Source: Macrostomum lignano
Taxonomy: Eukaryota
Reading direction: 5' to 3'
NCBI GenBank assembly: GCA_002269645.1
Contig: NIVC01000514.1
Location: 493,453-557,452 of the forward strand
DNA: 64,000 nt
Both the position numbers and the translations under genes were made by a program. The notes under the pieces are model-generated. The model did no database searches. It was not told the origin of the DNA and saw nothing but the letters and a program-made list of their open reading frames with translations. Within the stretch, counting starts at the first letter, position 1; each line of letters begins with the position of its first letter. Shown piece after piece: positions 3,001 through 60,034 of this stretch.

Positions 3001-5203
3001 CGGTTTTACTGACGACATCTTCAAGCTCGGAAAGCTGATCGTCTTCAAATCCTCCTGATTCCTTAAGTTCAGCTAGAAGCTCGCCGAGAGTCCTCTGCGC
3101 TGCCTGATCCTTTTCAAGTCGCTCAATGGTGGCCTTTGAAATAGTCTCGCTGGAATCCAGAAGACCTTTCAAATCGCAGCGGCTCAAAATCATCATCTGG
3201 ACGACCTGTCTTACTTGATCAGGTGTCGAGTCACTAGAGTGAATGAGCTCCATTAGCTTGAGCGTGCTTGCCGAATCCCAGTGATGCATTGACAGAATGA
3301 GCTCAACCACACATTCGGTGTCCGATTTGTTATCAAGATAGTCGGCGATGCCAGCAGTTTTCAGCATTGCTATCAAGACGGATCGGAGTCTCTTCAAGTC
3401 GGTGTCTGTATTCTGGGTAGGCCAGAGTCGAGTAATATCTTCAGCCACTAAGAGTAGCTTGAGCAGAATTTTTATGACAGGAGTTGTCTCATTCTGCTTT
3501 TTTGCCATTAGCAGCTTATCCAGATGCTCTATGGCACAATTTGTGTCACGGAACTGACGATAAAGTTCATCCATCTCATCTTCGTTCGAAAGGTCTTCAG
3601 CGGGTTCCTCTTTAAATAAAAGCAAAACCAGCAAGCCATAATACACCATGTCGATTTCTGTTTTCGGAAAGCAAAATTCTATGAGAACCTTGTTTGCAGC
3701 GTCTACCACTTGGCCAGCCGACTCTTCATCTAGCAGCTTCAGAAGCGACAAGTGTGTCGCCATTTGATTCTCTTTATTGGGCTGAGGAATTCGTGACTTC
3801 CAATGACTATAAAAATGATTCAGGAATTGCGATCTTGAAACGGCTTCTACAGTTCTCAAAGCATTTTGACCACTCGCATTCTGACTTGCGTCTTTGAGAC
3901 GGGTAAAAACATCTCCGACAGCATTTTCAATGCTTTTATCTATTTGGCTCCTGATATCTGCAACAGTAGCATCGGAAACTCCAAGGCTTGCATAGTCTTT
4001 TGCACACTTGCCGCGCACATGCTGTATCGAGACTCTCAAGCCTTTGAACAATCTCTGCATTTCTTTTGCTCTATGGTTTTCCCTTGCTGTTGCCACCTGC
4101 CGTCCAAATTTCTCTGTTTTCTGTAGGTTCTCAGACGCTTGCTGATTTCTCCTTATCTTTGCTCGCTGCTCTTCAATTCTTCTTGAGATATCGGCCTCTC
4201 TTTCAGCTAGTTCAGCTTCGAACTCTCTTCTTCCTTTTTCAAGCTCCTCCTGCTGCGACTGCAGTCTCTTCTTCATCTCCAAGCTATGCTCTTCCATCTC
4301 AATCTGCTTCTTCTGCATCTCGCTCTGAAAGCGATCTTTCCTTTCTTTAAACTGCGCTTGCAGACGAGCTCTGTGTTGATCAGCTTCCGCATTGAGGCTG
4401 TTAAACCTTGCACTTGTCTCTGACGTAATCCGCTCCTTTTGGTGCCGAAAGCTTTCCAGTCTTTCCATTCGAATCTTTTCCACCTCTTTTTGTTCCTCCA
4501 GCAAATCCTGTTGGCCTTTATATTTCCAGTCTGTCTTTTGCTTCTGCAGTTGAGAGAAAAGCTTTTCTCGATTCTTATTCTGCTGGGAAGAACTCTCAGC
4601 CTGCCTGCCTAACCTGTCTTTTTGCATCTCCTGGCACCTTCTTTTGAACTCATCTTCTCTGCGGCTGAATGCGTTTAATGCCCTGCTTCTTTCTGAATTC
4701 CACGCCTCCCATTTTTTTCTGTTTTCTTCTCGGATCCTATCCTGCTGATCCTTCTGCTCTTTTATCTTTCTTTCGTCAAAGAGTGTCCGTTCTCTGTCAC
4801 TCTGCTTCAGCTGCTCTCGAGCTGTTTGCATTCTTTGCTCCCGCTCTCTGCGTTTCCTGTCAGCAAACATAGACTTCGTTTCATATTTATATTCTGCCTC
4901 CTGTTTGCCGTCATAGCTCAGATGAATAAATCCCTCTGCCGGTGAATCCAGCTTCCATTCTTTGTTTCTGATCCCATTGCACCAAGACTGCATGTTTGGG
5001 TTTTGAATGGTCTCGTGTTTACCGTGCATTCCGTGTTTGAAGTAAATGTTAACCGGTAGACCTGCGTAGTCATAATGAACTGATCTACCAGATGGCAAAT
5101 TGATGAGCTCGGATCCAGCACCAACTCCTATCACCTTGTACTTCGCTGCCACGCTCCAGTCCTCTTCTGTGTCGTTACAGAGCTTGCTCCCGGTGTTGCC
5201 CAT
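1..5203 (-). CDS. Large SecA-DEAD-like ATPase-domain protein (eukaryotic SecA-like family), >1734 aa, C-terminus beyond the left edge of the window
   Basis: ATG at 5203 (MGNTGSKLCNDTEEDW...). The same frame (codon first base = 1 mod 3) was confirmed by hand at about 4880-4620, 4138-3600, 2455, 1495, 1369, 1213, 478-360 and position 4; not every codon was checked. SecA motifs in order: YLPRNTQLL (~2850), QILTGEGKS (Walker A, ~2765), IVYGT, FDAVIVDEVDSLLLD (~2455), FFRRY..GVSGT, YKVQLNYIPP, RPTLIVCE, VATNLAGRGTD (~1210), GGLHV, EEQVCGRSGRKG (~1080). E/K/R/Q-rich coiled coil at about 4850-4050. The ORF track omits it because no stop falls inside the window. Confidence 0.9.
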   Translation of the reverse strand, partial: MGNTGSKLCNDTEEDWSVAAKYKVIGVGAGSELINLPSGRSVHYDYAGLPVNIYFKHGMHGKHETIQNPNMQSWCNGIRNKEWKLDSPAEGFIHLSYDGKQEAEYKYETKSMFADRKRREREQRMQTAREQLKQSDRERTLFDERKIKEQKDQQDRIREENRKKWEAWNSERSRALNAFSRREDEFKRRCQEMQKDRLGRQAESSSQQNKNREKLFSQLQKQKTDWKYKGQQDLLEEQKEVEKIRMERLESFRHQKERITSETSARFNSLNAEADQHRARLQAQFKERKDRFQSEMQKKQIEMEEHSLEMKKRLQSQQEELEKGRREFEAELAEREADISRRIEEQRAKIRRNQQASENLQKTEKFGRQVATARENHRAKEMQRLFKGLRVSIQHVRGKCAKDYASLGVSDATVADIRSQIDKSIENAVGDVFTRLKDASQNASGQNALRTVEAVSRSQFLNHFYSHWKSRIPQPNKENQMATHLSLLKLLDEESAGQVVDAANKVLIEFCFPKTEIDMVYYGLLVLLLFKEEPAEDLSNEDEMDELYRQFRDTNCAIEHLDKLLMAKKQNETTPVIKILLKLLLVAEDITRLWPTQNTDTDLKRLRSVLIAMLKTAGIADYLDNKSDTECVVELILSMHHWDSASTLKLMELIHSSDSTPDQVRQVVQMMILSRCDLKGLLDSSETISKATIERLEKDQAAQRTLGELLAELKESGGFEDDQLSELEDVVSKTAKYFDMSGFSKAKKTITEKLSKIKLWERGKEPPLHKILIDLSKAVRKCKGYLPRNTQLLSAAALLKSSASKKFGQILQILTGEGKSCIVAMTAVGLLLLGRTSVDVVAPSEVLAERDCQEWHDFYQECKVTVSCNINHKKPKECYESKIVYGTVSSFAGDVLRHEFQFKEIRGTRSFDAVIVDEVDSLLLDQGVQLTYLSQDVGDMKMLDPVFPTIFRATFGCQVLNTVHGGEMVAEQAMTFLYFLKELTSDEEFNELIETLLQKELINSEEKKDFLNQTVDPVDLSQFDIGRVREILTTAADSLLQFPRCNIYIYRNAEIEPLEHSEDCSTHLLVNQGGVCRLLFANIEDFISKKREDVQSQINYSTSLKDSTDDSKTEVTSKEKQLPMPKHLKGFIDDMLDVWINSALTAGVLQPGRDYLLQDGDAVPVDFKHTGVVQENMRWSDGLQQFLQLKHRLQMRPLGLETNFLSNLYFFRRYGTAVFGVSGTLGEEHEKEFMRKTYKVQLNYIPPFRERRLVENPGIVTETKSECISKLCQLVKKERHRPTLIVCEDINSADLVLNEVTRRCHGVTPKRYIRNEDTKSELIVGPGDVIVATNLAGRGTDVKVNDEAEAAGGLHVLVTFLPLNQRVEEQVCGRSGRKGQRGSATLILSQEGLSACFADCDSVEEMKQVRREASLQELRNHTEFSMPEVEFKESLFRRFSRSLTKYRQANKDDIDLKLKLNCLKEIWGMHLKTILCHTADFSKPNTDKYIREVKETFKDATKNIESDCLMSPFQTLKLADKCLRQEDFQKAIDLYTTAIAMNCAWSSIAYYNRAYAKIMKGDSGIEDIKNDLQEAKTRIKETWLAHALWTQFFSGARLKADETDQVDQADQVDQADQEVTSDQTDQVDQADQKVTSDQTDQVDQADQKVTSDQTDQVDQADQKVTSDQTDQVDQADQEVTSDQTDQVDQADQEVTSDQAFKLDEKSDKSALFGQCTTRIDIILKYKAGIEQSLK
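110..400 (-). repeat. In-frame coding tandem repeat, 45 bp / 15 aa unit (DQTDQVDQADQEVTS or ...KVTS), about 6 copies, inside the SecA-like CDS
   Basis: Unit gatcggatgtaacctcttgatcagcctgatccacttgatctgttt repeats directly and stays open in the SecA-like frame. Confidence 0.9.
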
Positions 5204-6288
5204 GCTGCAAAGTTAATGCAGTTGTTATTAAATTGAAGCAAATCAAAAAACGCACGGACACTAAAAGCAGCAAAAAATGGAGAATGTATGTTCCACGTTC
5301 TACGAGCTCGTACCTCGTTAACGAGAAGTTTGCTTCCACACCCTGATTGCTGCCCACATTCGCTACTGGAGAAGGGTAAGCCATCGATAGCAGGCGCTTT
5401 GGTCTGGAGCTGACCTTCGAGCTTCATTCTAGAGCCAGTTCATTCTAGCTTACGAAAATCCTTATTTTATCCTTTTTATCCAATGGGACCCCAAGGAAGG
5501 GACTTTGGTGGGAAGTCTCGACATTAACTGGTTTAATTCTAGTCAACTGGTCTGACAAGTTATCAATTGCAGTAGTTTGTTCAAATCCCCGCATTGAAAC
5601 TTAATGTATCAAAAAATGTAGTTTTTTTGTAAGCAATAAAATCACAGTGACCAACAGCCTATGAGCTATGAGTATGCAGTCAGATTCCATATTGGAGCTT
5701 CAGTTATAAATTCAAATCCCATGCGAGTACATTATATGCTTGCACAAAGCAATAACGTTTCTTTCTTACCTTTGGGCATGTGACGTGTATAGCAACCAGG
5801 ATCAAGATTTTTAAGCAGTGATTAATCGAGAATTTTTTTATTATGTTTTATATTTATAAATGTCTTACTTACCAGTCCACTTTATCTCATATTTGCGATG
5901 GTGCAAGAATTAGTACCTTGTAGAAGGTAACTGCAAGAAACAAACAGCATGGGTTAGAAATTTAGCGCACTGTAAGTACGCAATTATAGTGTAATACACT
6001 GCAAAATGTACGCAGAAATGGCCCGCCTCCTCGGGTCCATGAGCACACAAAACTGAACTTCTCTTTCTGTTGAACAGTACGAGCGTAGACCGACTGCAGG
6101 TACAGATGAAACTTTCTCACCTTTTAAGAAAGGATAATTTTTTCGTATAGTGAATTTGCATGCACTCTGCCTCTTAGCTGAGCCACAATAAGTGAAGTTG
6201 TCTAGATTCCTAGAACCTCCTTCCCTAACAGGTACATGAATCTACTGTCAGATAAGATTTTCTGACATATTTTTCTCAAAAACTTCAA

Positions 6289-9200
6289 ATGAACGACGAC
6301 GGGCACGACTTAAAGCACCATTTTCGCTTTCTAGTCAAAAACAAAAGATCCACAAGGCAGAATGGAAGCCTGGAAAGTGTGCTCGTCTTTGATTTGGAAG
6401 GACCTCCTTCTTTTTCGTCCAGTAGATGGACAGAAGCGAGCAAGAAGCAAAAGACAAACCACGCGGAAGTCGAAAAATGGTTTGTCAAGTTTAGGAGGAG
6501 CCATGAGGAGGTAAGACCACTTTTGAAGAGATTTTGATTTACATCATTTTCAAATTCAAGGTGCCGCCTGTACTTTAGGTCAAAAGCTCACTGTAATCAG
6601 CAAGCTCACTAGATGCAGAACAATAATTGTAGTCAATTATTTTTCTGAAATCTATAGCACACATACATACAGACAACTCATTTTTTGTATATAGGATCCT
6701 GTGATGCCAGTCGGCTTATTCATACTCGTACCTTTCCTTAAAGCTTGAGGCTAGAGGCTAGCTAGCCTAGATGCATAAGGCTTGTATTGTACGAGCGTAC
6801 TTTACTCTCTCGTGTTGCACTGGCGCATTTGGTGGTGGTTGGCGTTGCAAATCGTCCTGAACAAGTGCAAGCAGTGTAAAGCAGGCTCCTAGCTGCAGGC
6901 TGCAGTCCAAGGACAGCGGGGGAGGCAGGAGTCGCTCATTCCTCATCTAATTAATGAAAAAACGAATTATCTTCCATTTTTTCTCCATTAAGGTTCCAAG
7001 TGAATTTTCAAACAAAACTACTGAGGAACAGTTAGGTGCGAATCAAGTGCAATACTGTGGCTAGACATGCTTTTTGGTCTATTGTCTACACACGTCATTC
7101 CTCTCTTCCCGGGAAATAGGAGTTTATGCGCCATTTTTTAGTTCTCGGCTCACGGTGCGCCGTTGCAAATGAAGAGTCCTTAGCTATCCATACTAGAAAT
7201 TATCTGTACCAAGAATATGTTTTCGTTCCCTGCCATCTTCCACCTTCACCAAAATAGACATGAGCTCGCGCTAGATGGCTTGAGTAACCAAATACTGAGA
7301 TGCGATTCTATCATTCTCAAACCGCTGTGAGCGGACAATAAGTTCGGGCTTGGAGGTAAGTTTGGGACTACTTCGAACAGTGAGCAGTTTTCTCTTTGCT
7401 TGCGATTCTCCTGATCGCCCTGTGTGCTGCAATTCCGCCGAGCGTTTCAACTTGCATTGTTTTATGGAACGGGCGCTCTATAGCTCCCAGTTTATGATAA
7501 GATGACGCGGTTGTGTTCAATCAAAATTCGTCAATGCAGACCTCGAGTTCTTTGTGTTTTTTTACTCCCCATACCCACTCGCTCCAGATCAGATCTACAC
7601 GTGGGATGTAGAAGAAGGGTGTTTGATTTGCGTTTTAGTTTGTAAACAGTGAGTTCGTGCTGCATTTAACCGTCTCTCTATACCCTTGTAGATTAATGTG
7701 TAGTGCGTATGCTGTGTCATCTCAATTCAGAATCGTCCTATTTCCTTTGCTACTCCTTTCAGAGGAAGGAACAATGGAGCTGCAATGTCGAAGTAAATAA
7801 AAAAAGAAGAGAAGTGTCTTTGGCAGTATTAGGCATGACAATCTTGGATAATATCAAAATTAGTTCGACAAAGATCACGGTGGCCGACTGCAAGCAGGAA
7901 TTTAACCAATTGGTCTTGGAGTCCACAAAGGGAATTAATATCTCATCTAGATGCATGCAAGGGTCCAAAATAAAACTTCTTTCTTCAGAAGTTGTGTTGG
8001 CAGAAAGCTCAGTTGTTCAGTGCTCGCAGTTGCTATGCGAATCAACGATCCGGGAGGTGTCATCCAGCCTGATTGTGTTTGGCAGCATCTTGCCGCTTCC
8101 CTGTTCAACTGAGGAAGCTGATGGCAGCCTTTCCATTCGAGTTAATGGAAATATTGTAGTAAAAATGGATGCAAAAATCGGATATTCGGACCGGCATAAA
8201 AAGGCCAAAGAAGTAAGTTTGATCAGTACTGATGGCATAACAAATGTTGGAGTCGTATTTGCTGAACACAAGATAGAAATCTCGGCAAAGCAGATTCGCT
8301 CTCCAGTATCGAGCAAGGAGTCTGCAGCTCGTGTGTCAAAATACCTCAGTAACGCTGGCAAGCAAAGCAAGGCTGAAAGGAAAGCGAGAGACGCCGACAA
8401 GCAACTGATCGATTCGTCCACAGGTGATTCTGCAGCAATGAAAAAGCTGCTATTTTCTGGGGCTGATCCTACATTCAGAGACAAAAAAGGTGAAAGCGCC
8501 ATTGCGAAGCTCAGAAAGGCGATTGCTGATCTGGGAACTGCGCCGAATCCACCAGGTGTCGCTGAAAAGAATAAACTCAATAAGAACGCGATACTCCTGA
8601 AGTGGGAGGCAAACAGTAAGGGAAAATACCAGTCACAGAGTATCTGCTGTCTTGTTAGTGAGGATGTTGCCAACCTCAGCCAGTTTCTGGGTGCAAAAGT
8701 TCATCTTGAAATTGGTGGGGATGCGTTTGTCGAAGAAAGGTCTGTATGGAAAAGTGGGTCAATCAGCGGTTGGTGCCGCGGTAGGCTCAATGTCCAAGGA
8801 GAAGTCAAGATAGAAGAGCTGAATAAATTCGAGGTTGGAAAATGCAGAGTCCAAGCAGGGGCAGAATTGTGGTTAGTGAATGGCGGTACATTAAGAGTAG
8901 TACGTAGTCTTGAAAACATTGGATGCATATACAACAGCTTCAAGAAGCTCTCAATGGATGTTGAAAGTTTCTCACAGAGTGTAGTTGCAGCTGCTTATTC
9001 TGAGAAGGAGAACAAAGCTGAGCTTCAAATTATCACAAGGAGACCAAGTGAGTCCGTGTTTGGCAGGCTGGGTGGCTACCGAGTCACCGTCTGCGCATAT
9101 GCTCGGCTTACGCTTCAGGCTGAAGTTGAGGCCATGGAGTCTTTGGTAGGTGTCATTTGTAGTCCAGCTGGTCATATTTCGCTGCAAGGAAATATTAAAA

Positions 9201-12200
9201 TAATCGAAGGACCACTTGTTGTACATTCCTGGCTTCGAACCTGTGGCTTTGGACCTGACGTAGATTTAAACTGCAGCATAGAGTGCGCGGGCATAGTCAT
9301 TCCTGCTGCAACAGTGAACTTTGGTCCTAATAGCCAGTTGCTGTGTCCTCCACAGTGTAGTCCAGAATATTGCGCGAATAGCATCGAAATCGTGTTAAAC
9401 AAAGCTCAAACACAAAGCGGATCAGTATGGGAGTTCTTTACTCGCGAAGTGAGCATCTTCATCGGAACTAAATTCACTCACCAAGGCAGCCTGAAGCTTT
9501 GCAAGAAAGGCGAAACAGGTCTTGAGACAAGAGAAGAGCATGGAGCGTCTGTATACATAAGGGGAAACCGATTTGTTAACAAAGGAATGATAAGTGGCAT
9601 GAAGGCCTTATGCATTGATTTAGACAGTGATTGTGAGCTAGACAGAAACCTTGAAGTACATGACTCCATTTCAGTTTTGACAAGAAAGCATCTTACAATA
9701 TCGTCAAATACTAACTTGAAGTCCGCTAACGGAAGCTTGGCGATCAGTGCAAATTTCATAGCTAATTTTGGTGCTGTTCACAGCCACACGGATTTGATCA
9801 TCGAGTCCGGAGACATTGATAATTCAGCTGGGAGCATTGCATCAGACCATGGAATCGTCTTTATTGCCTGGTTAGGGCCACAGGAAAGCTGCTACCTCGA
9901 GGGCCATGTACAAGCGGGTTCGCAGCTCGTGTGCACAGCAGCAAATTCTAATATGCTGCATATCCACGCCAAATCTCACAGCCAGCCATTGCAACTGCAA
10001 ATTCCAATGAACGGCGCCAGCTTCCAATGCTTGTCAGGATCCGTGCACTTCATTCAAAAGTGTGCTCGCCTGAGCAAACTTTTCTTCATTTAAGAGCTTC
10101 CGAATTAATCGAACTGCAGCGAAGCGTCACTTGCGACACACTCCTCGTTCAGCCGGCCGCGTCTGCTTCGGAGATGAAGCTGACAGTATCGAAACTGGAG
10201 AAAATAGCGGTGGGCTGTTTGTTAATCAGCCACGTGAACGACCGGCAGAACCAAAATGCTAAAGCAATTGTAATTGAAGGCCAGCAAGGGTCAAAATTAA
10301 AATGCAACAAATTTATGGGGTCTGAAATCAGTCTTGAGCTGAAAATAGCCGCTGAAATGGATATGCCAAGCCAGATTATGGCACAGCAGCTGTTTATTTC
10401 ACAGGACTTGACCGTTCAAAGCCAGCAAGGCGTGTGCGGAGAATTTCTAGTCAGCTGCGAAACTGAACTGAAGATTAGTGGCAATGCGGAGTTCGTTGGG
10501 GCAAGCAGCTGTCTTGTGAGAGCTCGCAGACTGTTACTCTGTGATGCGGCCGTACTTCGCCTCTTGCGTCTGACACACGTGACTATTCTGGCAAAGGAAG
10601 TCGTGACTAAAGGTATTTTTTTCGCTTCTTTAAAAGATAAAGACCGTGCCGCGATAGTGATACATGCGGATGAGTTTTATTGTCATGGATTGATTCAGTT
10701 TGGAAGTGAAAGCTCGACAAATCTCATTTTGCATGTCAACGAATGCACAATAAGCGGTCGCATCGTTCACGGCAATCAGCCATCGCTGATGCTGATTGAA
10801 TTCTCCAAAAGTGCCACGGTTCTGCCGGAGAGCGAAATTGATTTAGGGAAACTTCTGCTAATTGGGGGATGCGAAGGTACATGCAATTTTAAGTCTGCAA
10901 CCCTTTCAGTGTCTGAGTTAATGGCTATAAAATCTGTGCGCCGGTTGTCCTGGGAGACCAGCAAAGTCAAGCTGAACCAGGCACGCTTCATTGTAAAAAA
11001 CGTTGAGCAGGTCGCTCTTAAAAAAACTGAAATCATCTGCCCTCAAGGTGTTGTGCTTGACGAGTCACTAGTGGGAAGCTATGAAGTGAGCACAGCTAAA
11101 GTAAAAATCTGTGCTCAAAAGTTCACCCTGGAAACTGGTTCCGAGATTCGCAACATTGATACACTTGAAATTCACGCCTGGAAATGCGCCCGTTTTGAAC
11201 TAGGCAGCAAAGTACAATTTTGCAATAACTTTTATCTAAGAAGCAGATTCATTTACTTTCAGGCGTCCGTACACGATACGGGTGGCATTGATTGTCAAGC
11301 GGAAAGTATCGTAGTGACTGGGAGGGTGGATTGCTTTAGATCGCTGTCCATTGCTGCATCTCAGCTGCTGCACAATCAGGGAACGTTGAGTGCAAAAGAT
11401 GTCAGACTCGATGCTACCGCTAAGCTGCACATGTGCTCGAGCAGCGAGGATCAGTTCTACCCAGCGATAATTTCGGCAAAAAGCTCACTGCAGCTGAATA
11501 GCTACATCATGTTGTCTATATATGCCGAACTACGCAGCCCCACAATAGCAGTCAAGAACATTGCTCACTTTGGCTTTGCTGAGCACGTGTGCACAACAGG
11601 CGAATCTAAAGTTGGGCAACAAAGCGCGAGTCGTGAAGAAGTTGAAAAATTCCTGGGTGCCAACTCTACAGTTGTCCCCAGCCAAACAGCGAGATGCAAA
11701 ATCTATTTGAATTCATGGTGCTTGAATCGGTAAAAATGTTTTTAGAAGATCACAGCGGTGTGCACAGCTCGTCTTCACTGCCACTAAATGGTTGGCAGAG
11801 ACGCTAAAACGAATCCGGACTTCTAGCCCTGAGCAAAATTCAATGGATGAATTCGTTTGTTTAGTCGCGAAGCTCACTAATGCGGTCAGAGAAGGCTCGC
11901 CTGAGCCAGAGAAGAACTAATCGCCTTCTGGGAAGAATTATGCCACAGCGACTGGCTTCCGCTAAAGCTTCAAGGATTTTCGAACGCAGCCACTGCTGTG
12001 TCTGGTGGGGCCAACTCGAATAGAAGCGGCGAAAATAATTCACGAGTGCAAATTCTGGCGTTGCGATGGGTCCATATCCGTAAAGGACGGAGTCCTCATC
12101 AAGGCTGTCCACGTGCAGCTGTGGTCCGAACAGCCAACAACTTGGCTTGTGTGCACTGCAGATGTGCACATTTTAGCGGATGAAAAATTGAGAGTTCGAT

Positions 12201-15200
12201 TCTTGACATCAAGCGAGGGCTCAGTCACTCTGAGGGGTGGGTAATCGAAGCACACGGAATCTGGTCTGCAGAGACCATGTTGATGTCGACTGATCAGAGT
12301 CTGGTGATTGACGAACTCCTTGGTGAGACTGGTGTCTGGATTTCGGCTGTGGATGCCACGGTGACTAACGCAGCTGCCTGGAAAATGCACCTTCTGTCTG
12401 AATCAGGAAGTATAGAAAACAGTATAATTACCAAAGCACTGGAGGTAAGTTGTTCAGAAGAATTTAATGCAAAGCTAATTTTTACAAAGCATGCGCACCT
12501 GCTTGCCTCTGAGAAATCCGGCATGGGAAGGATAAAGTTGGAGTCTTCTAAAATAAAAGTCTGCATTGTTTCGAGCGACTTTTGCCAGACGCTGAAGTGC
12601 TCTTTTGTCGATTGGCATTGTCTGATTACACGCGACCTGTTACTCAGATCATCGAAAGTGCATAATATTTTCGTAGCTAATGTTTGCAATGAGCTTACTA
12701 TTACTGCCGGTTGCCACCTTGAGAAATTACAATGCAGAGTACACCAGACACTGAGCATTGACCAACTCAAAGCACAAGATATATCTGTGGCTTGCTCAGA
12801 TTTCAAGGCTTCCTTTTTATCGGCGAGAACATTAGAGGTTGTTGCTACAGAAACCATTACAATAAGCGACTCCAGTATTATGGACCTGACGGCTCGCTCA
12901 GGCAACAATTTGGAGATTTCAGGCAATACGGCTAAGACAGACCTCGGAACTGCAATCTGCGTGAGCGGAAAATCTCTCGCAATAATAAATGCTTACGCTA
13001 CTGAAAAGCTGGTCGTATGTTCCAATTGCGTTAGCATTAGAGGCACCATGCTTTCGGAGCTCGAGTAATTTGTCCGGGCAAAGGTGAAATCGTCATTGAG
13101 AGCTCGATGGTCGTAATGATTTCGTGGCTCTGTGCCGGAAACTTGCCTCAAAGCAAAGCAAATTTGTTCGGTTGTTCTTCAGGGGCAAGCAGTTAAGCGT
13201 GTTCCAGACAGAGGCAAAGCAGATTTATGCAGATGCTGACGAATGCTTCCGCCTGTCAAAGTCAAGTGTCTCAGAAAATCTCATCGCTTGGTCCGAAGCT
13301 GCGCATTCATTTTTAAGTTACCTGGGCTCAATGAAACTTCGCCACTGCTCAGTGGGATCTACAGTGAGAACGTGCGAAGTGGAGGGGAACATGGAGATTC
13401 TCTGTCGCATGCTCAAAATGTCCGATTCCAGCGCAAATTCTCTCATGATCCTGTCAGGAGGAAATACCAAATTGGAGAGGCTGATGATTACGAATTCCTG
13501 TGATGCTGCCATTGTAGGCTCAACTACCTTGAAAGATTGTCAGCTGGGGCAACTAAATCTGCTGACTGATTCCTCACTGCAAGTCAGTAAACTTATCGTT
13601 AATGGCGGTGCTTGCATTGCTGCCAAAGGCGATGCAGCACTTCGACAAATCATGGTGGGAAGTCTAAATATAGACACGAGGAACTTCCGTCTGTTCGTTT
13701 CTGACCTCAATTCTGCCGGCCTGAGTCATTTGAAGTCGGGGAGATTGTGCGTGTCCGGATGCCAGTGTCTGTCGGATCTGCAGCTGACAGCTGTGTTCTC
13801 AGCCCGAGTTTCTCAGTGCTTCGCCACATGCTCTGTCGTTATTCGGGGCGCGAATGCGGGCTGCTGAGAGTAGGGCTAATGGAACTACAGGCAGAAGAGC
13901 TGACCATTTTGAATTCCCTCTTCGTGGTAGTTAGTTCCATAGAAGTTTTGGAAAATGCCGTCTTTAAAAACATTTTGGGTGATGTACGAATCAAGTCAAA
14001 CTGCAGTGTGCATAATTTACAGGTGCAGACAGAAGGCATTTTGGCAGTCAGTAACTCTGAAGTTGGTCAGATTACATCCCAGTGTCGGCGCTGCTGCATC
14101 TCCACCACGTGCGGACTCCAGAAAAACTTCTTCATTCGAGCTGCGGAAACAGAGCCCGGACCCACTGTTTTACTGGACACAATATCGAGAATCAACTTGA
14201 TAGATGCTGCCGGAAGAGAAATTCGCCTGATGGAATGCGTCTTTAACCTCGGCATCATTCGGACTCACGCACGTGTCCGATTGGAGGGCTGCATGGTCAA
14301 AGCGAATGTCGATATTCAGAGCCCCATCGTGAGCGTGTCCGACACAAGTTCTGATAAAATCCGAATTAGTGACTCAGAATTCTGTGAATTCAAGGAGGTA
14401 AAACACGCGCAGATCTGGACGAAGACTTGGGAACTGAAGCTTTTGGACTGCTGTCTTCAGGAATTGCAAGCGGAAGTCACTGGTACGGCACGAGTTACTG
14501 GTTGCGCGTTCATCGAGAACCTCCTGCTCAAAGCCATCAAGGTGGAAATACGCGGTGTAATGGTTCAAAATCGCTTGCAAGTACAAGCGAGGAGGCTTCA
14601 GCTGGATGGCAGAGATCCAGACAAGAAGAATGAAGGATACTCTAAAGAGCTTATGGTGATCTCTGACTCGAGTACGTGCGGTGAAGCAGCATCGGTTTGT
14701 GTAAGTGATATCCGAATCGTTCGATTGCAAGTGATCAAGAAACCCAAGACCTTAAAACTTGCTCGGGTGACGGTTGAGAAAGCCGTTGTCTTGCCCGCCA
14801 ATGAGATTGAGCTAGATAATTTTGTCGCCCCGGAGCTATTATTGGACGCAGATCCTCTGAACTGTGCGATCAATTCAGGATCCATCCATGTTCTTATTGG
14901 CTCTGTGCGAAATCTGTCCGTGCTGAAATCTTCATTGAATCGAGTCCGAATTTCATGCGACACTCTGGTCCTAGCTGATGGAACAGACGTTCAGCAGGAG
15001 CTGATAGCTGAAGTAAGGGACGTGCGGATCTCAGACTCTAAATTTGGGTCAGTTTTTATTTCGCCAGAAGTCCCATACGAAAACAATTGCACAGCTATCG
15101 CAAAGATTCAAAGTGTCGTAACGGAATCTACCTTTCAAATATTAGACTTTCGGGATATTTTACTCGGCAATTATTGCATATTCAATGGCGAATCAATACT

Positions 15201-16983
15201 AAAGTGCCGTACATTCAAAGCAACGGAGTTCAGCCGATTTGACTTAGATGTGACTATTGACTGTGAGTCTTGCGAATGGAAAGATCCAGTGTTATGTGCA
15301 TCCTTGACACTACGCTGCTGCACCGGATTCATCGAGAAGGCGAAGGTGTCCAAGAGCTGCGATTTATTTGTGTCTGGCTCATTGCGAATTGCCGATTGTC
15401 AGTTCACCGAGTGTCTTCAGTCGTTCGGAAAGCAAGCAACGCTGGAACTCGTGAGCCCAAGGCTTGGCCGGTTCAAGTTGGAGAGCCATCGACTGACGCT
15501 GATGGCGCAGACGTACAGGACGGATCCTCGACATCCTCGATAAGCGCGGCCAGCAATGCGCACCTTAGTCGATGCCAGATTGGCGGAAACCTGCAAATAG
15601 CATCAAGATGCGTCAGAATCGACAGTCATACTTCAGTCAGCGAGTCGCTTCGAATAGAATGCTCTGACGGCCTGCACTTGGAGGACACGACTGTGGGCTC
15701 ACAACTGACAGCCTGTGCCAAAGGCCAAATCTCAGTGAACTCCGGAGTCACAGCTAAAAATTTTCTCATGCGCTCCGAAATCATTCCAACTTTTCAGCGT
15801 GCAAAAAGCTGCAAGTTTGAGCAACTAAAAATAGATTGTTCGAATTTGAATACAAAAAACTTGATTTGCTTTCTCAGTGAATCGAACTTACAGTGCGTAA
15901 GAGAGCTCCTCTGGCTGAGCACTAAACTCGAATTGGATATTCGTAGCACTGAACTTGCTCTGGTGTTCGGCCTAACCCTATCTGCCTCATCAATCAGCAT
16001 CAGCAACAGCCTGACGTCCATCAAGCCGATTTCTTTGATAGCAAACAATGGTACAATTGCGCTACAGGAATACACAAACAATGGTACGTTTTGCAGCGCA
16101 ACGGACAATAAGCTCTGAGATAAATTAACGCAAGCTTTCCAAAACAAAGTTGAGGCCAGAACAATTGTAAGCTCGAGCTCTTGAGTAACTGCAGCATTGA
16201 GTACGAATGGAGCTCAGGTATTCTCGAGTACCGAAAGAACTAGGGCCCTTTGCGAGCCCCAACAACAGTCAGCTGCAATCGATTTCAACTCTGATGCAGC
16301 CACAGCCTGCGAACGAACGGGAGCACCAAAGCCTCCGATCCGGATTGGCAGAAGTTCGATAAAGAATGCCGCTCGGCCGAGGCAGAAATCCGGGGGGCAA
16401 TGGACACAGTGCCCACTCAGCTTAACTGCGACTTTATTTTACCGAGTATTGACAAATCACGACGGGAGTTTGAGAAGTTAATGAAGACAGCAGAGGCTGA
16501 GTTTAACCTCGAGTTCCAAGCATCTGATGATGTCTCGGATAGAAGCCGGAGCTGGCGAGACTTCAGGAATGTCTGCTCAGAATGCGCAGTTCCAGAAGAT
16601 CCAGAAGATTCAGAAGATTGCTTTCAGAAAGCCAGAGAAGCACAGCGGTCTTTTCTGAGCAGCTGCACGAGCATTCCTGCGAGTACCTCGGCCATTTGGA
16701 GAAACTGCCCAGCCATCTGCCGCAGGAGCTGGAGAGCTACATGAGCCGCACTCAGCCACTGGCGCGTCGGTCCGAGCTTCGCGTGACCATCGGGCCCTCC
16801 GGAGTGACCAGCATCGAGGGCGTCATCGCACGGGCCACCTTCTCCAGCGCTGACGTCATGTTGGGCCCCGCCTTTCTGGTGCCGATTTCCCGAGATCCGG
16901 AGGAGCTCTCTGCCAGGAGATTCGACACGAGCAAGCCAGATTTCTTCAAAAACTATTACCAAAGTGACAGCGCTTCAGCTTAA
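6289..16983 (+). pseudogene. Giant (~3,000+ aa reconstructed) beta-helix / filamentous-haemagglutinin-like protein gene broken by many frameshifts (pseudogene or assembly errors)
   Basis: Chain of overlapping same-strand ORFs: 7703-10093, 10027-11733, 11726-11920, 12005-12244, 12277-13068, 13124-13867, 13747-15543, 15270-16118, 16400-16744, 16582-16983. All but the last two share alternating hydrophobic/polar beta-strand periodicity and FHA-like turns (FVNKGMISG, FIANFGAVHS, DIDNSAGSIASD, LLHNQGTLSAKDVRL). Putative first coding exon 6289-6510 (GAG|gtaaga) joins in phase 0 to the acceptor ctcctttcag|7763. The family assignment is pattern recognition only. Confidence 0.6.
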
Positions 16984-19078
16984 CGGCACACTAACGAATT
17001 TCAGTAAGTGCTTGATTATTTTGTGTCGGGGTGCATCTGCACTGCCTAGCCATCTCGGGCTTGCAGTCAGTGCACCAGTCACTGCACTTTTATCCCTTCA
17101 GTTGTTTAGACAGTTGTGTACGCGCCACCCACCCACTGCCTGTCTGGGCCAGCCTGCTTTGGCTGGCTGCGCCCTCTGCGCGCCCTCCCCTCGCTTGCCC
17201 CGCGATTGGCTGGCGGCCCAGCCGATCAATTAGATTGCTATTTTTCTCCAATCACGACCGTCGCGTTCTGCAAGTTGTGAATTTTGTAATTTTGGCTAGC
17301 TGGGCCTGGCGTAGCAATACCCTGGGACTTAACCAGCTAGTGCAAATATATATATATATATATTGGCGTGTGCGGCGGTATGGGAGACCACCCTCCGTGC
17401 CGATCTAGACTCTGCATACTATCGCCAGTAACTGAGCAAAAAATCAGTATGTACTCAAAAGCATTCACTGTCCAAATTGGAGAGTCCGCCCCTACCGCCG
17501 CCACAGTCACTGCTGTGTCAAGTCAAAGAGTGAGTCGCGTCTCTTATTTATTTGCGGGTTTGGCTGGGTTCGAATTGCGCCATAGGGACGGCTGACAAAG
17601 TCTCGTGACGCGATTCCACGCTTGGAGTCCGAAGTCAGTTCGGCCAGTTGACTAACGCCATCTTCTGTGCTCGTTTGCTGAATTAGTTCAGGTTACGATC
17701 CGGCCTTTCACAACAATTATATTCAGTTTGACTTCTGTTTTATTCAAGGACATGCGGCTCCACAAAATTACAGCCATTTAAAAGTTTCCTCTAAGTCCGA
17801 TTTTAAATACTTTACGCACTACCCCCTTTGGTTCATTGATACCCTTTGATATCTTTTCAAGTGTATAAGTGTTACTTTTTTAAGTTCACTGATTGTCTTA
17901 GAAATTTTAAATGTTCAATTTTCAACTTATTAACAATTCCATTATCAATTATTACTTACATTATGCAATTATTCATTTTTCATTTACTATTGACCAAACA
18001 ACAAGGCAGAAGTAGGCATGTAGAAGTGACAAAAACCCAATAGAAACCAGCAATATTTCGTGTGCGCAGTGCAACTGATTGAAGTAAAACAAAAATGAGC
18101 ATCATAGTTCTGAAATATTTCTCAGAAGAAAATTAATTCATCAAGTTACCTTCAGTACATGATTAGGGCACTCGTACGACAAATCTTAAAGAATTTCGGT
18201 TAGGCTTCGTTTTTTACTTGCTGCATCTCCGTCCTGTTTTTTCTGTTGCAGTTCGGTCTTTTTAGATCAAATTTCTTCTTTCACTCCGGACTCTTATTTA
18301 GATTCTCTTTCTTTCCTGGCTTCCGGTTTTTCCTTGTTCGGCCTTCATCGTTTGATATTTTTTCGGATTTGGTTCCCCATTCTGCTTTGGATCCCCTTTC
18401 TTCTTTGAATCCTCTTTCTTATTTATATCACCATTCTTCTTTGGATCCTTTTTCTTCTTTGGATCCACATTCTGCTTTGGGTCCCATTTCTGCTTTGGTT
18501 TCTCTTTCCTCTTTGGTTTCTCTTTCTTCTTTATATCACTTTTCTTCTTTGGATCCTCTTTCCTCTTTGGTTCTTCTTTCTTCTTTTGATGCTCTTTCTG
18601 CTTCTTCCGCACGTTCCACACGGGTAAAGGATCTTTTTATTGGGTAAAAAAGAAAGTTCTCGCGGTTTTTGAAGCCTTCTATGAAGTGAAGTACTTGAAG
18701 TACGAGTATATGTAATGGTACTTTAGCACTGTAGCTGAAACTTGAATTCGGGTTGCTCTACATCAGTCAATGGCCTTTTTATACCTCTGCACACGTGGCT
18801 TCCAGAAATTCTGTAGTCTTATCTTCACAAACCGTGAGAACTTTCTGTTTTACCCAATACTTATGGGAAGCCGTTTGTCCGGAACAGTCCGAGTTCTTCT
18901 CAGCGAAATCACGGAAATTCCGAGGATAGAGGCGTGAGGGGCGCCAAACCACACCTTTGGAATGGCGCCGATTCTCTCAGATATGCCAATAAATCCTTCC
19001 GCTGTAGCGTAGCAAAGACGCACAGCCGATGGCGGCTTCTTCTGGGACAGCAGCGTCGAAAACTCGTCACAGGTAGAC

Positions 19079-19824: not shown

Positions 19825-22800
19825 CTATGGACGGAGGGTTGGCGCCGCCCAGGGAGGTCCCCCAGTGTCGCCAGCAGCTATGGTGCTCTCTGGAAAGGAG
19901 AGTTCAGCCCTGCGGGTGGCCCGAAGGTAGCGCATGAGCTGATTAAAGTTTTCGGGTTTGCACGCTTCAGTAATAGATGTGTGTGGCCCGAGGTAAGTGA
20001 GTCTGGCCCGCGTGAAGGCGGGACAGATGCTGACGAAATGCTCAGCGGTTTCGTCACCTGAGTTGCAGAAACTACAGGTGGCGTTGGTGGCGTTGCCCTG
20101 CAGGTACTGGTGCCTGGAGAAGCAGCCGTGACCAGAGAGGGTCATGGTGGCAGCCCGGATGTCTCTGCGCGAGAGGCGCAAGAGGAGCTTCCGGAGCTGG
20201 TGAGAGGGCTGAGGGACAGCGCCTCTGGATTGCCTGCAGTTCGTGCGGTTCGCCCAAGTCGAGCGGTGCTGAGTCCTGATCCACGCTTTGATGCGCGAGT
20301 CGATGACACAGCCAGGAATCGGGACAAGAGGTTCGGGGCCGAGAGAGGAGCCGGAGGCACCAACTTTTGCAAGGGTGTCAGCCAACTCATTTCCTCGGAT
20401 CCCCACATGCCCCGGAACCCACTTAAGGGTAATTTTGTTGGCGGAACCCAACACATTGAGGAGTTTGATACAGTCAAGGACTGTAGCAGAGTTGGTGCTG
20501 CAGCCACTGATGGCGTGCAAGGCAGCTTGGCTGTCCGAATGGAAAATGATGTTCTTACCAGTAACGCCAGTGGCGAGAAGCTCTGCAGTGCAGGAGCTGA
20601 TGGCCAGAACTTCATTTTGGAAAACACTGGAGTTGACCCCAGTGTATTGAGCGTGGGTAGCGATGACCCTCCCGTTCAGAAAGATTCCAACACCAAAGCC
20701 GGTGTTGGCTGACTGCTTAGAACCGTCGGTGTAGCAATGAAGCTCACCAGGGTTCCAATGGTCATTGATGTTATCGCGCGAGTCGATAGCTACGGAGTAG
20801 CGCTGTCTCAGGTTGAGCGTTGAGGCAATGCCATCGGTGAAGACGCGATTGGCCTGACACTCGTTGAGAAAGTTGAGGCACAGATCGCTATGCGGGACAA
20901 GGTTCCGCTTAGCAGGTGCTCTCATGTAAATGAATTTGACGCCGGCATCAATTAGACGCCGCGTCGTTCTAGCCGCCTCACCCCTGATGAAGAGGTCAAG
21001 AGGCGGAAGATTAAGAAAGGCCCCCATGCCAGCAAAGGGCGTGGACCTGGTGGCGTTGCAGATGAGCCTACACGCTCTGCCTTGGATCGTGTTGAGCAGG
21101 TCTGCATGGCTTTTGACCTGGGTAGCGCTAACCCAGACAACAGAGGCGTACGTAATGGCAGGTCTAACTACGGAAGTATAGATCCACCAAAGCCGCTTTG
21201 GGGATAGACCCCAAGAAGTGCCAAGTGCTCGTCGGAGCTGGGCCAGGATGGCTGAGGCACGCTTAGCTTTTGCTTTCACGTGGAAGGACCAGTTGAGCCG
21301 GTGGTCAAGTGTGACCCCGAGACATCTGGTCTGGTGCGCGAAGGCAATATCTCTGCCGTAGAGCTGCAGAGGACGTATGTTCCAGCGTAGTCTGCTGGTA
21401 AACATAATGGCAACGGTTTTGGGCTCAGAGAGTTCCAAACCATTGTCATTGGCCCAGGATTCTGCTTTGCGGATAAAGCTCTGCATCAGATCCCTGAGCG
21501 TGCTGGGAGACGGTCCTGCCACAATGGCCGTGACGTCATCAGCATACCCGACTTTGAAGACGGGGTCAGGTCGGGAGTCACTCAGAAGAGCGTCCATGAC
21601 CAGGTTCCAGAGCGTCGGGGTGAGGACTCCGCCTTGGGGTCCACCCTTACAGACTCTGGTGGAGGCAGTTTGCCCAAGAAGTTGGGCAGTGACCGTACGG
21701 TTGGAGATCATGTACATGATCCACCGTATGAGGGTAGCATGAGCTTTGCGATTTTGAAGGGCCCTCTGAAACGCTTCAAAGATAACGTTGTCGAAGGCGC
21801 CAACAATGTCAAGAAAGAGAGCCAGGGCGTAACCGTCACCCAGTACCGCCCGTTCAATCTTTTCGACAATCGCATGCAGGGCGCTGTCAGTCGACCTCCC
21901 GGTACGGAAGGCGTGCTGATTATTGCTGAGGGGCATCGCTGTCAGCTCGCAGGAGAGCAGCCGCCAGAGAATAAGCCTCTCAGTGAGCTTAAGCATTGCT
22001 GACGTTAAGCTAATTGGCCGGAAGGCCTTGACGCTTTGGTAGTCACCCTTCCCAGGTTTGGGAATAAAGACTACTCGAGCTTCAGTCCAGCTTTTGGGAA
22101 CGTATCCCAGCTGGATAGAGGCCCGCATAAGATTGCGGGTGAGTCTCAGGAACGAGGGTATCTTGGCTGCTTCACGAAGGAGAACAGGGTAGATACCATC
22201 AGGTCCAGGAGATTTGAAGGGTTTGAAGGTTCTGACCGCACGAGCGATTAGGTCTTCAGTGACAATGCCCGCCGCTAGGGTGGCTCCATCCATCGAATGG
22301 TTGGGCTCCGGTCTAGCAGTAGGTACCCTCGGGAAGAATGTGCTAAGCATATGCTGAAGCACTTCTTCAGGGTCTTTAGTAAGAGAGCCATCATCTTTTT
22401 TGATCATGGCTAATTTGGACATTTTGTCCATTGTAAGGGCCTTGACAAGCCTAGAAGTAGGTCTGTCTTGATCCAATTCATTGCAGAATTGGCGCCACTT
22501 ACATTCCTTGGCCTTGCGCACTTCAGATTTGAAATTGCGGGAGGCTTGCCGGAAAAGCTCCATGTCCTCCGGGTTTCCGGTCTTCATGGCACGGCGATGA
22601 AGGCTTTTGGCCTTCCGCCTGAGTTTCCCCAGCTCCGGGTTCCACCACGGCGCCGAGGTCTTGCCTCTGTAGGCGCGAGCAGGACAAGCCGCTTCGTAGG
22701 CTGCAATAATGCAACCTGTCAGCGTCTCAGCCATATGATCCACATCCTCGCAGGTCTCAATCGGACGTAAGTCCGTGAGTTCCTGCAGGTGCAGATCAAG

Positions 22801-23565: not shown

Positions 23566-23829
23566 ACTGTATTAAATGCAATATCTGGCTAGAGCCCAGG
23601 GCCATCAAGGAGACTTGGACAACAGATCGTCCTCGTCCCAGGCCGCTGGGGCTTGACTGGGAGATGGGAGTTGGTCGACGTCCATGGCCTCCTCACCCCC
23701 ACCGGCCCCCCAGCAGAGTCCTCAGGCTCCGATGACAGGATGGAGGAAGCTTCCTCACCTGCATCTTTACCTTCAGACCCCACCAAGGTGGCCGAGGAGA
23801 GCTCGGATTCCGAAGACCCGGCCTCGTCC

Positions 23830-25164: not shown

Positions 25165-25867
25165 CTGACCGGGCAGTAGGCCAATAGCACCCTCAAGGCT
25201 GGCCCGACACCAGGAGGGGGACCGCTTGCGACCGGACTACTCCCCGGCCTTCCAGCCCATCGGCACGGTCAACACCTTAGGCATTAGAGAGTACGTTGAG
25301 CAGTACCACGGCCTGCAGGTTGGCGAGCCAGACCCGCATACCCAAATTCGGCCGAAGCCACTGGATAGGGTCGCCAGCGCCGGAGCCCAGTCTGTCCAGC
25401 AGCCCTAGGGACTGCCTTGAACACACGCGGGGACGAGTACCCTGGGTCGACTTGCGAGACAGCGTGGGGGGGGGGGTCTGCGGCTGCCAGAGGCAAATAG
25501 AGGGTGCAGACCTCCCACCAGCCTTGACCTGCTGAAGATAGGGGCAGGCGTGAAGCATCGCAGACCTTAGCCCATGGGCCTAGTCTGTCTCATACTTCAC
25601 TGGCATGCTGAATACGCCTTCGCGTGCGACGTTGCGCTCGGGTTCTGTAAGAATTTTTAAAAAAATTGAAGATATGCTGAAAAATAAATCCTCATTAATG
25701 GCTTTTTCAAACTCCTGCCATTTGCCTGCCCATCAATAATCGGGTTCTCCCAGCAGCCGATGCCCCTTCCTCTTCTGATGCCAGATGAACACCTCCTGCT
25801 TTGTTAGGGCACTGCACCTTCTTGTGAGGTCCTCGGCAGTTGAAGCAGCTGATCTTCGACTTTAGAC

Positions 25868-26030
25868 TGTTGTCTCCTGGTCACGGCACCAACGTGTGTC
25901 CTGGTCACGGCACCAACAGTGTGTCCTGGTCACGGCACCAACATTGTGTGCTGGTCACGGCACCAACGTGTGTCCTGGTCACGGCACCAACATTGTGTCC
26001 TGGTCACGGCACCAACGTGTGTCCTGGTCA
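25868..26030. repeat. Minisatellite, 22-25 bp unit (tgtgtcctggtcacggcaccaac)
   Basis: About 7 direct copies visible. Confidence 0.9.
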
Positions 26031-32972: not shown

Positions 32973-36857
<3,885 letters not shown>

Positions 36858-60006: not shown

Positions 60007-60034
60007 GGACTGACTGACTGATGGACTGACTGTT

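Follow-up and report, generated by a model that had tools for sequence, protein, structure and literature searches.

How a flatworm genome comes to carry a run of long, overlapping open reading frames (ORFs) that resembles one giant bacterial filamentous protein is the question raised by a stretch of DNA from Macrostomum lignano. The stretch, hereafter the window, comprises 64,000 nucleotides (nt) of contig NIVC01000514.1 (assembly GCA_002269645.1, positions 493,453 to 557,452), and the unit of interest lies on its plus strand between 7.7 and 16.1 kb. A preliminary description, made from the window alone, read the ORFs as one hidden gene for a β-solenoid protein related to filamentous hemagglutinin (FHA). 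Here, we report a family of FHA-like β-helix proteins in animals that lacks a secretion apparatus and is undescribed, of which the window provides what is probably a dead member.

RESULTS

The ORFs at 7.7 to 16.1 kb and their common origin

Stop-to-stop open frames of 92 to 798 codons succeed one another on the plus strand from 7697 to ~17000, occupying all three phases and changing phase at each junction. They lie at 7697 to 10090 (frame 2), 9952 to 11730 (frame 1), 11966 to 12241 (frame 2), 12184 to 13065 (frame 1), 13100 to 13864 (frame 2), 13705 to 15540 (frame 1), 15267 to 16115 (frame 3), 16185 to 16478 (frame 3), 16295 to 16741 (frame 2), and 16543 to 16980 (frame 1), such that neighbors either overlap or lie ~35 to 240 nt apart. 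An ORF of 798 codons is beyond chance at 46% GC ((61/64)^798). Moreover, a codon-usage score trained on three of the ORFs follows the same path from frame to frame, falls to background before 7750 and after ~17000, and dips over 11730 to 11965 and 13000 to 13150. Both the stop-to-stop map and the codon-usage path bear out the observation that ORFs abut or overlap across three phases.

Relatives were sought by an exhaustive HMMER search in which the first 1,199 residues of the stitched translation were compared with 1.84 billion representative proteins. Seven matches only were returned (E 1e-20 to 1e-3), none of which bore a bacterial name. Two are giant proteins of 3,952 and 3,040 amino acids, the latter being P0003, and their cluster mates include P0011 (3,918 amino acids) and P0014 (4,193 amino acids). 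Another two come from the blood clam Tegillarca granosa (KAJ8305344.1, a "hypothetical protein" of 715 amino acids) and from the octocoral Paramuricea clavata (CAB4033201.1, a partial protein). A further family member is found in Logan SRR30826389 contig 745 (12.4 kb), at 179 to 12266.

A profile hidden Markov model (HMM) was built from P0011, P0003, P0005, and the translations of the Tegillarca and Logan copies, and the window fragments, lettered A to I in order, were scored against it. Fragment A scored 220 bits (profile positions 140 to 844), B 26 bits (1293 to 1476), C 18.8 bits (1694 to 1828), and F 17.9 bits (1811 to 1991), whereas 100 shuffles of the stitched protein never rose above ~0 bits. 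An earlier, thinner profile gave the same collinear picture, and its position 5 fell on the 13th residue downstream of 7763; thus, the N terminus of the family coincides with the start of fragment A. Because A, B, C, and F lie in three frames and match one profile collinearly, the ORFs derive from one ancestral reading frame. We conclude from these sequence comparisons that the window ORFs are pieces of one gene-sized unit, a family copy of ~2,800 to 3,100 codons. The single gene that had been proposed therefore stands, but a continuous protein of 3,100 to 3,300 amino acids does not, as continuous reading needs at least eight corrections and the evidence backs 2,784 codons, from 7763 to 16115. 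No homology supports the extension over 16116 to 16983 that would give ~3,100 amino acids.

The fragments, all on the plus strand, differ in how firmly each is tied to the family. Fragment A (7709 to 10075, frame 2; in-frame ATG at 7709, homology from ~7800) is the conserved N-terminal family module. It scores 215 to 221 bits against the family profile (E ~1e-66 to 1e-68), aligns by tblastn at 22 to 26% identity with P0001, P0003, P0011, and others over 8100 to 9960, and keeps the invariant Gly, Gln, and Asn columns of the family in an eight-sequence alignment (alignment A1). Inside its β region lies a helical insert with two ankyrin-like repeats (8369 to 8614; LLFSGADP at 8447), followed by an all-β repeat (8624 to 9922) that begins with the most conserved family motif, GDIxDCSQLxG, here DVANLSQFLG at 8663. 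Fragment B (10078 to 11730, frame 1) is homologous to the central region of the family over ~11077 to 11610, where it scores 22 to 26 bits (independent E value [i-E] 3e-8 to 4e-10) collinearly at profile positions 1293 to 1476 while shuffles score ~0 bits; against P0003 alone it reaches 8 to 12 bits. Fragment C (12241 to 13065, frame 1) is homologous over ~12586 to 12942 (13.7 to 18.8 bits, i-E 7e-8, profile 1694 to 1828), and fragment F (15523 to 16115, frame 3), which ends at a TGA at 16116, over ~15537 to 16070 (11.7 to 17.9 bits, i-E ~1e-7, profile 1811 to 1991). Between them, fragment D (13183 to 13860, frame 2) is recognized by its open frame and codon score, its family match being marginal (2.5 to 2.7 bits), and fragment E (13861 to 15522, frame 1, 554 to 612 codons) has β-type periodicity (z=2.6) and no match to the family profile, Pfam, PDB, or NCBIfam. 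Antisense ORFs on the minus strand lie opposite fragments A (8017 to 8673, 218 codons) and C (12294 to 12926, 210 codons) and are most likely by-products of sense-strand codon bias.

Sequence searches of every window fragment against Pfam, NCBIfam, and PDB were empty, except for a weak match to a designed ankyrin repeat protein (DARPin). A word-indexed protein search with fragment A or alignment A1 returned no matches and is uninformative, as it likewise failed to recover the known relatives.

Evidence for a β-solenoid

Ser, Leu, Ile, Val, and Cys are abundant in the stitched translation (Cys at 4.1%), whose hydrophobicity shows excess power at a period of 2.0 to 2.3 residues (z=5.1 pooled; 4.3 for A, 2.5 for B, 2.6 for E, and 2.6 for F). 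Helical-period hydrophobicity is depleted in the fragments, and the β-type pattern is absent from a control, ORF2 of a long interspersed nuclear element (LINE) in the same window. N-x-G occurs 15 times where 6.9±2.4 are expected, a real but modest excess. Thus, the shared β-strand periodicity and the N-x-G enrichment given in the preliminary description both hold, the latter modestly. No significant internal repeats were found by blastp and hydrophobic autocorrelation is absent at coil-length lags, so the solenoid is not a recent tandem array.

The fold of the N-terminal module was predicted with AlphaFold2 from window residues 61 to 771 and alignment A1. The model has a mean predicted local distance difference test score (pLDDT) of 79.9 and a predicted template modeling score of 0.75, and model residues 228 to 660 (433 residues; window residues 288 to 720) are all-β and mostly above 90. 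There, strands of ~11 and ~4 residues alternate and recur every ~20 residues. Four helices precede the β part (model residues 143 to 224) and resemble the ankyrin repeats of cpSRP43 and DARPins in Foldseek, with probability up to 1.0 over 68 to 76 columns and a root mean square deviation of 1.4 to 2.3 Å at E ~0.6 to 2. The DARPin sequence match of this insert is weak (E=0.25) and Pfam gives none, but its LLxSGADP motif is conserved and the insert is present in all relatives in alignment A1. The β part found no significant match in PDB by Foldseek, and the sole β-type entries were the TpsA adhesins EtpA, HxuA, and HMW1 (E 0.9 to 2.3). Among predicted viral structures, its best matches were β-helix fibers of giant viruses (E 8.4e-4, template modeling [TM] score 0.34), including a "hemagglutinin repeat protein." On this model, the N-terminal module may be read as a β-solenoid of the fiber type. 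Structure prediction had been suggested as a check on the β-helix, and it supports a confident β-repeat in the N-terminal third but neither confirms one in the distal 1,200 residues nor gives significant TpsA fold matches.

Relatives in other animals

Four relatives are intact. P0001, P0003, P0010, and P0011 are each encoded by one uninterrupted ORF of 9.1 to 11.9 kb (9.1 kb for P0003 and 11.8 kb for P0011) on contigs of 0.23 to 1.9 Mb, and the flanking DNA is eukaryotic looking, with only short ORFs that lack Pfam matches. Introns are absent from the intact relatives. The ~650-amino-acid N-terminal module of the family includes the ankyrin-like insert and a GDIxDCSQLxG...VEExSxWxSG block and is present in the window copy. 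By contrast, the C-terminal regions are wholly different between lineages, being ~75-amino-acid helical repeats in P0011 and Gly-rich 24-amino-acid repeats in P0003, where residues 2432 to 3040 hold ~25 copies of the unit (KSGDQEIAMAGGTGKEGKHASFRA). P0014 has more copies (~2950 to 4193), and P0003 and P0014 are 93% identical and differ in repeat copy number (3,040 versus 4,193 amino acids).

Other copies are disrupted. In Tegillarca, the homologue lies at ~31.61 Mb of a 51-Mb chromosome (CM056598.1), spans at least 11.9 kb (21377 to 33287 of the locus), and is collinear with residues 1 to 3,900 of P0011. Of its four disruptions, the first is a stop in frame at 23285 and the other three are changes of frame; the last frame is open for 1,844 codons at the end of the locus. 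GenBank annotates 715 of ~3,900 amino acids (KUTeg_015889), or 18% of the length, and halts at the first lesion, the in-frame stop. The Logan member consists of three consecutive ORFs of 1,235, 1,397, and 1,080 codons, with each junction a -1 shift within an overlap of 55 to 94 nt, and its disruptions were counted as two shifts and two stops. Its conserved module is preceded by an extension with a Cys-rich, PHD-like stretch and a subthreshold match to OTU cysteine proteases (22.4 versus 23.3 bits). The Logan contig is almost wholly coding and may be a transcript. We note that gene prediction misses the family, as had been anticipated: no database protein corresponds to the window copy, and only part of the Tegillarca homologue is annotated.

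Three P0011-type alleles or paralogues differ by 58 to 168 nucleotide substitutions and by in-frame length changes, and none has a stop or frameshift over 11.8 kb. Their ratio of nonsynonymous to synonymous substitution (dN/dS) is 0.57 to 0.68. By our estimate, ~4 to 5% of random coding substitutions create stops, such that the most divergent pair should show ~7. None was found, and thus the P0011-type ORF is kept open. We conclude from these comparisons that it is maintained under weak constraint.

Similarity to bacterial hemagglutinin repeats resides in the relatives. The window fragments have no match to Pfam Fil_haemagg_2 (PF13332) at E≤1, but P0003 (25.6 bits), P0011 (23.8 bits), and P0014 (22.2 bits) match it as whole proteins (cutoff, 22). 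When the region homologous to P0011 residues 1700 to 2450 was scanned alone, the score rose to 34.4 bits (E 3e-8), and three of four lineages were positive (best E 1.5e-11). This region lies past the last profile position reached by the window copy. A PDB profile search with the FHA-like region of the relatives found nothing. No bacterial homologue was found by exhaustive HMMER, by a plasmid tblastn search with the FHA-like region, or by a pattern scan with alignment A2, which gave false pattern matches only, in GTDB genomes and JGI metagenomes. To our knowledge, Fil_haemagg_2 is otherwise a bacterial family, and a literature search gave bacterial papers only. Bacterial ancestry may therefore be inferred from profile similarity to an otherwise bacterial Pfam family. 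The idea of a bacterial-style filamentous protein in a metazoan thus survives for the relatives, which carry Fil_haemagg_2, but not for the window copy itself, which has no Pfam FHA match, and the searches found no bacterial homologue directly.

Components of two-partner secretion (TPS) were also sought. The window translation contains no NPN[GLI] motif, no N terminus like a signal peptide, and no transmembrane segment, the N terminus being judged by hydropathy scan. Models of the TPS domain (Pfam, NCBIfam) match neither the window fragments nor the relatives. A hydrophobic N terminus suggestive of a Sec signal peptide is absent from the window start candidates, P0011, and P0003, as judged by hydropathy scan rather than by a dedicated predictor. 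No gene for TpsB (FhaC/CdiB) was found among the scanned window ORFs or the Pfam annotations of genes flanking the relatives. The lack of a signal peptide and TPS motif, stated for the window at the outset, is thus confirmed by hydropathy, Pfam, NCBIfam, and motif search. We conclude that the stalk of the family is like that of FHA and CdiA but that the protein does not belong to the two-partner-secretion class.

Downstream of fragment F, trailing ORFs G, H, and I (16116 to 16983, plus strand, three frames) come with stops at 16116 and 16182 and with further shifts. The trailing ORFs have no Pfam match, and 16116 to 17405 matches neither type of C-terminal region known from the relatives. The ORF at 16295 to 16741 (plus strand) has amphipathic-helix periodicity (z=3.4). 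Its helicity recalls the switch from β stalk to helical repeats in P0011, although sequence similarity was not detected. The trailing ORFs may be what is left of a helical C-terminal region, or they may represent a 3' untranslated region.

Frame breaks, introns, and assembly

On the minimum-cost reading path that begins at 7763, 8 shifts or stops are required as far as 16115, and the number rises to 15 by 17420. All breaks are given for the plus strand. The first, between A and B (10052 to 10090), is a net -1 change out of frame 2 and into frame 1, the latter being open from 9952 onward. It is confined by family homology in frame 2, which extends to ~10051, and by the frame 2 stop at 10091. 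A degenerate zone follows (11731 to 12240), with a +1 shift at ~11730, TAA codons that interrupt frame 2 at 11918 and 11963, and a change from frame 2 to frame 1 at ~12239. The C/D break (13066 to 13182) has stops in all three frames and calls for either two shifts or a 118-nt intron (cga/GTAATT ... gttgttcttcag/G). Further changes occur at D/E (frame 2 to 1, ~13860) and E/F (frame 1 to 3, ~15520). We think it probable that the window copy is a recently decayed pseudogene of an unrecognized metazoan FHA-like β-helix family.

The alternative that survives best is that the gene is intact and functional, with each frame change a short flatworm intron (30 to 240 nt) and an mRNA encoding ~2,800 to 3,100 amino acids. 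We regard this as unlikely. Flatworms, including M. lignano, do have a class of microintrons of <75 nt with weak polypyrimidine tracts and splice sites nearer consensus (PMC6530080). Frame-restoring GT-AG pairs exist at every junction, and passable candidates lie at both gaps that have stops in all frames (13065 to 13182, score 3.9; 12237 to 12271, score 3.1). Moreover, the coding signal dips over 11730 to 11965 and 13000 to 13150, and a strong canonical intron lies just upstream of the unit. Such pairs, however, occur by chance more than 100 times per junction. When splice sites were scored with a generic donor/acceptor model and compared with the best-of-window score at 400 random points in uninterrupted coding sequence, the best scores at internal junctions were -0.7 to 5.3 against a null of 4.1±1.7 (99th percentile, 8.3). 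The scores lie within the chance distribution, and thus introns do not account for the frame changes. At the A/B break, the best in-range GT-AG candidates (35 to 170 nt) score 0 to 1 and so do not exceed the short-candidate null median (1.7), and the best-scoring A-to-B candidate would remove sequence that is homologous to the family in frame 2. A 238-nt GT-AG pair at 11730 to 11967 would bridge part of the degenerate zone; its acceptor is poor and it falls below the listed top candidates, the best of which scores -0.7. The 118-nt C/D candidate is borderline, at approximately the 90th percentile of the short-candidate null. Finally, the intact relatives are intronless, and the window candidates do not show the near-consensus splice sites of flatworm microintrons. 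Given the borderline candidates and low coding signal, one or two genuine introns are possible at 11730 to 12240 and 13066 to 13182. A 16-nt "gtaaaaatgtttttag" mini-intron at 11730 to 11745 was also considered and rejected, as introns that small are characteristic of ciliates and the window, plainly metazoan, has intron signals of kilobase size.

One intron candidate stands apart. An intron of 1,252 nt at 6511 to 7762 (plus strand; gag/GTAAGA ... ctcctttcag/AG) has a donor/acceptor pair that scores 9.8, above the 99th percentile of the null, and the mean intron length of M. lignano is 1.1 to 1.4 kb (PMC5730564). It would join a candidate 5' coding exon (6289 to 6510, plus strand), an ATG and 74 codons that end GAG/GTAAGA, in phase with frame 2 at 7763. 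The exon has a weak codon score and no Pfam match and is not required by homology, as the profile begins at residue 13 of the next exon. Alternatively, the 7762 acceptor could serve in trans-splicing. The upstream intron suggests that the locus once was, or still is, within a spliced transcription unit. Of the one or two introns predicted near the 5' end, one strong candidate is therefore supported, but introns do not explain the frame changes farther inside the unit.

A second alternative is that the animal has an intact gene and that long-read assembly introduced the frameshifts as indel errors, and we consider this less likely still. Macrostomum assemblies are PacBio based and were polished with Pilon or Arrow (PMC5730564, PMC10468722), and most of the disruptions are shifts of 1 to 2 nt. 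However, the LINE 3 to 9 kb away has ~5.3 kb of undisrupted coding sequence, which at the rate seen in the giant gene (~1 lesion per kb) has a probability of ~0.5%, and an intact LINE nearby makes general assembly error unlikely. Moreover, at least two of the lesions are not indels but in-frame TAA substitutions (11918 and 11963), and the break at 11726 to 11730 is not within a long homopolymer. The claim of a hidden intact gene is therefore not sustained: the frames are truly broken, and the locus is probably a pseudogene.

Other features of the window

The LINE is a non-long-terminal-repeat retrotransposon (19825 to 25164, minus strand) that appears intact, with a 1,246-codon ORF2 containing endonuclease, reverse transcriptase, and RNase H and an upstream ORF of 444 codons that has no Pfam match. 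Its best named protein matches are M. lignano gene models that have incorporated LINE pieces (77% identity over 29% of the query), and further matches show 96 to 97% identity over 12 to 13% of the query. The LINE thus points to a metazoan host, M. lignano or a close relative, although this evidence comes from a transposon rather than from a host gene. An 18/54-bp tandem array (18368 to 18603) yields long ORFs on both strands over 18246 to 18647, rich in Lys, Glu, and Pro on the minus strand and in Ser, Leu, and Phe on the plus strand, which are probably a repeat artifact rather than a gene. Dozens of satellite arrays occur in the window and are very dense over 25871 to 62799, and GC content ranges from 29% to 61% in 2-kb windows. 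They include a 13-mer repeated 47 times (30986 to 31590), a 12-mer repeated 69 times (32012 to 32834), a 31-mer repeated 26 times (43568 to 44380), a 2.7-kb array of 30/61/92-bp units (48525 to 51228), (GACT)n repeated 197 times (60008 to 60797), and a 33-mer repeated 25 times (61972 to 62799). A 443-codon ORF without a Pfam match lies at 39659 to 40990 (plus strand). Rfam and tRNA scans of the whole window were empty.

DISCUSSION

What an intact member of this family does can be proposed from its architecture. An intact gene would be a single exon encoding a protein of 3,000 to 4,200 amino acids, and the relatives show an N-terminal β-repeat with an ankyrin-like insert, a very long β stalk, distal Fil_haemagg_2 repeats, and a lineage-specific C terminus. 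Such a protein would probably form a long, rigid fiber or scaffold that is cytoplasmic or unconventionally exported, with the ankyrin module, presumed to bind, at one end and the lineage-specific repeats at the other. Mechanically, it would be like the stalk of FHA or CdiA without two-partner secretion. With no fewer than eight frameshifts or premature stops over 8.4 kb, the window copy would not be translatable as one protein and is presumably nonfunctional. Hidden polyploidy arose recently in M. lignano (PMC10468722), and the copy may have become redundant after genome duplication. By our own estimate, the ORF lengths and the balance of ~6 to 7 shifts to 2 to 3 stops fit neutral decay at ~1% divergence.

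Several points weigh against reading the window copy as a decayed member of such a family. Fragments D and E (~800 amino acids) have no detectable homology, and single-sequence AlphaFold2 of the distal 1,200 stitched residues (pLDDT 31) is uninformative either way on the solenoid. ORFs of 550 to 800 codons survive, and thus any decay must be recent. The fragment lengths (0.6 to 2.3 kb) are not far from the mean exon sizes of Macrostomum (0.7 to 0.9 kb; PMC10468722), and the splice model used here was generic, whereas flatworm microintrons are <75 nt and have weak polypyrimidine tracts (PMC6530080). Local indel errors may occur in a PacBio-based, polished assembly. Finally, dN/dS of ~0.6 in the relatives indicates weak constraint only, and the function of the protein is inferred from architecture.

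Two further explanations concern where the unit came from. It might be the cargo of a mobile element or a fragment of an endogenous giant virus, which would explain a single exon, a patchy spread, and frequent decay. The top significant fold matches are giant-virus fibers, including the hemagglutinin repeat protein, one relative has an OTU-like N-terminal extension, ankyrin repeats are present, and the window, Tegillarca, and Logan copies are all disrupted. OTU domains and ankyrin repeats are common in large DNA viruses. Nonetheless, we consider a mobile or viral unit improbable, as the 7.7-to-16.1-kb unit is not bounded by terminal repeats, whether direct or inverted, no viral or transposase ORFs lie beside the intact copies, the fold matches are as weak (TM score ≤0.34) as for any two long solenoids, and same-species alleles keep the ORF open. 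That the unit is a bacterial contaminant, or was inserted very recently from a bacterium, might be suggested by its kinship to FHA-type repeats, an otherwise bacterial hallmark (PF13332), but is effectively refuted by GC content like that of the surrounding flatworm DNA, by a metazoan LINE and satellites on the same contig, by the lack of a bacterial relative in the HMMER, plasmid tblastn, and GTDB searches and of a TPS domain or signal peptide, and by the Tegillarca copy within a chromosome of 51 Mb.

How the family compares with known systems depends on which part is considered. Like the bacterial TpsA proteins (FHA/FhaB, CdiA/BcpA, HMW1, EtpA, and HxuA), it has thousands of residues of β-strand repeats, and its relatives pass Fil_haemagg_2. 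The order of a conserved N-terminal part, a long stalk, and a lineage-variable C terminus also recalls the overall organization of CdiA-type proteins (PMC3482391). Unlike TpsA proteins, the family has no Sec signal, TPS domain, NPNL or NPNGI motif, TpsB partner, or recognizable toxin domain; it sits in animal chromosomes and has an ankyrin-like N-terminal insert, and its window copy reaches no FHA model. Fibers of giant viruses (prasinoviruses, mimivirus-like viruses, and Gaeavirus) are the top structural neighbors (E 8.4e-4 to 4e-2, TM score 0.2 to 0.34) and are likewise long solenoids of a single exon, but identity is 9 to 12%, and there is neither a common conserved module nor a viral context at the loci examined. 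Animal proteins with PbH1 or parallel β-helix repeats, such as fibrocystin/PKHD1, CEMIP/TMEM2, and SHCBP1, are multi-exon and mostly secreted or membrane bound. In contrast to these, no window fragment or relative has a Pfam β-helix or PbH1 match. Teneurins, which derive from bacterial Rhs/YD polymorphic toxins, set a precedent, in that a filamentous toxin scaffold of bacterial origin became fixed in animals (PMC3482391). Teneurins, however, are YD-shell transmembrane proteins found across bilaterians with known neuronal roles, whereas the present family is of β-helix type, patchy, without a transmembrane segment, and uncharacterized.

The preliminary description had offered a lineage-specific family as one option, and this does not hold, as members come from three phyla. 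Judged by homology, the family occurs in Cnidaria, Mollusca, and Platyhelminthes and is not lineage specific. In the literature searched, an FHA-like family in animals is not described, and a survey of eukaryotic polymorphic toxins lists toxin, immunity, and processing domains and, in the portion consulted, mentions no FHA-repeat stalks in animals (PMC3482391). We tentatively suggest, as a possibility that falls short of a likelihood, that animals of at least three phyla carry an undescribed, single-exon family of proteins of 3,000 to 4,200 amino acids that lack signal peptides and combine an FHA/CdiA-type β-helix stalk with an ankyrin module and C-terminal repeats that vary by lineage. This family would have been acquired from bacteria or giant viruses, is kept open by selection in some species, and has been repeatedly lost by decay in others, including in the window copy.

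If that suggestion is true, a giant FHA-like β-helix protein would join the animal repertoire, one that current gene prediction truncates or omits. The family would provide a test case for the transfer of filamentous adhesin or toxin scaffolds between domains of life and another for the maintenance or decay of 10-kb intronless ORFs in animal genomes. It would also represent a second, teneurin-like case in which animals domesticated a filamentous toxin or adhesin scaffold from bacteria, one that standard annotation misses. The window locus, most likely a dead copy, would mark the presence of the family in flatworms and advise caution in annotating a hidden-polyploid genome.

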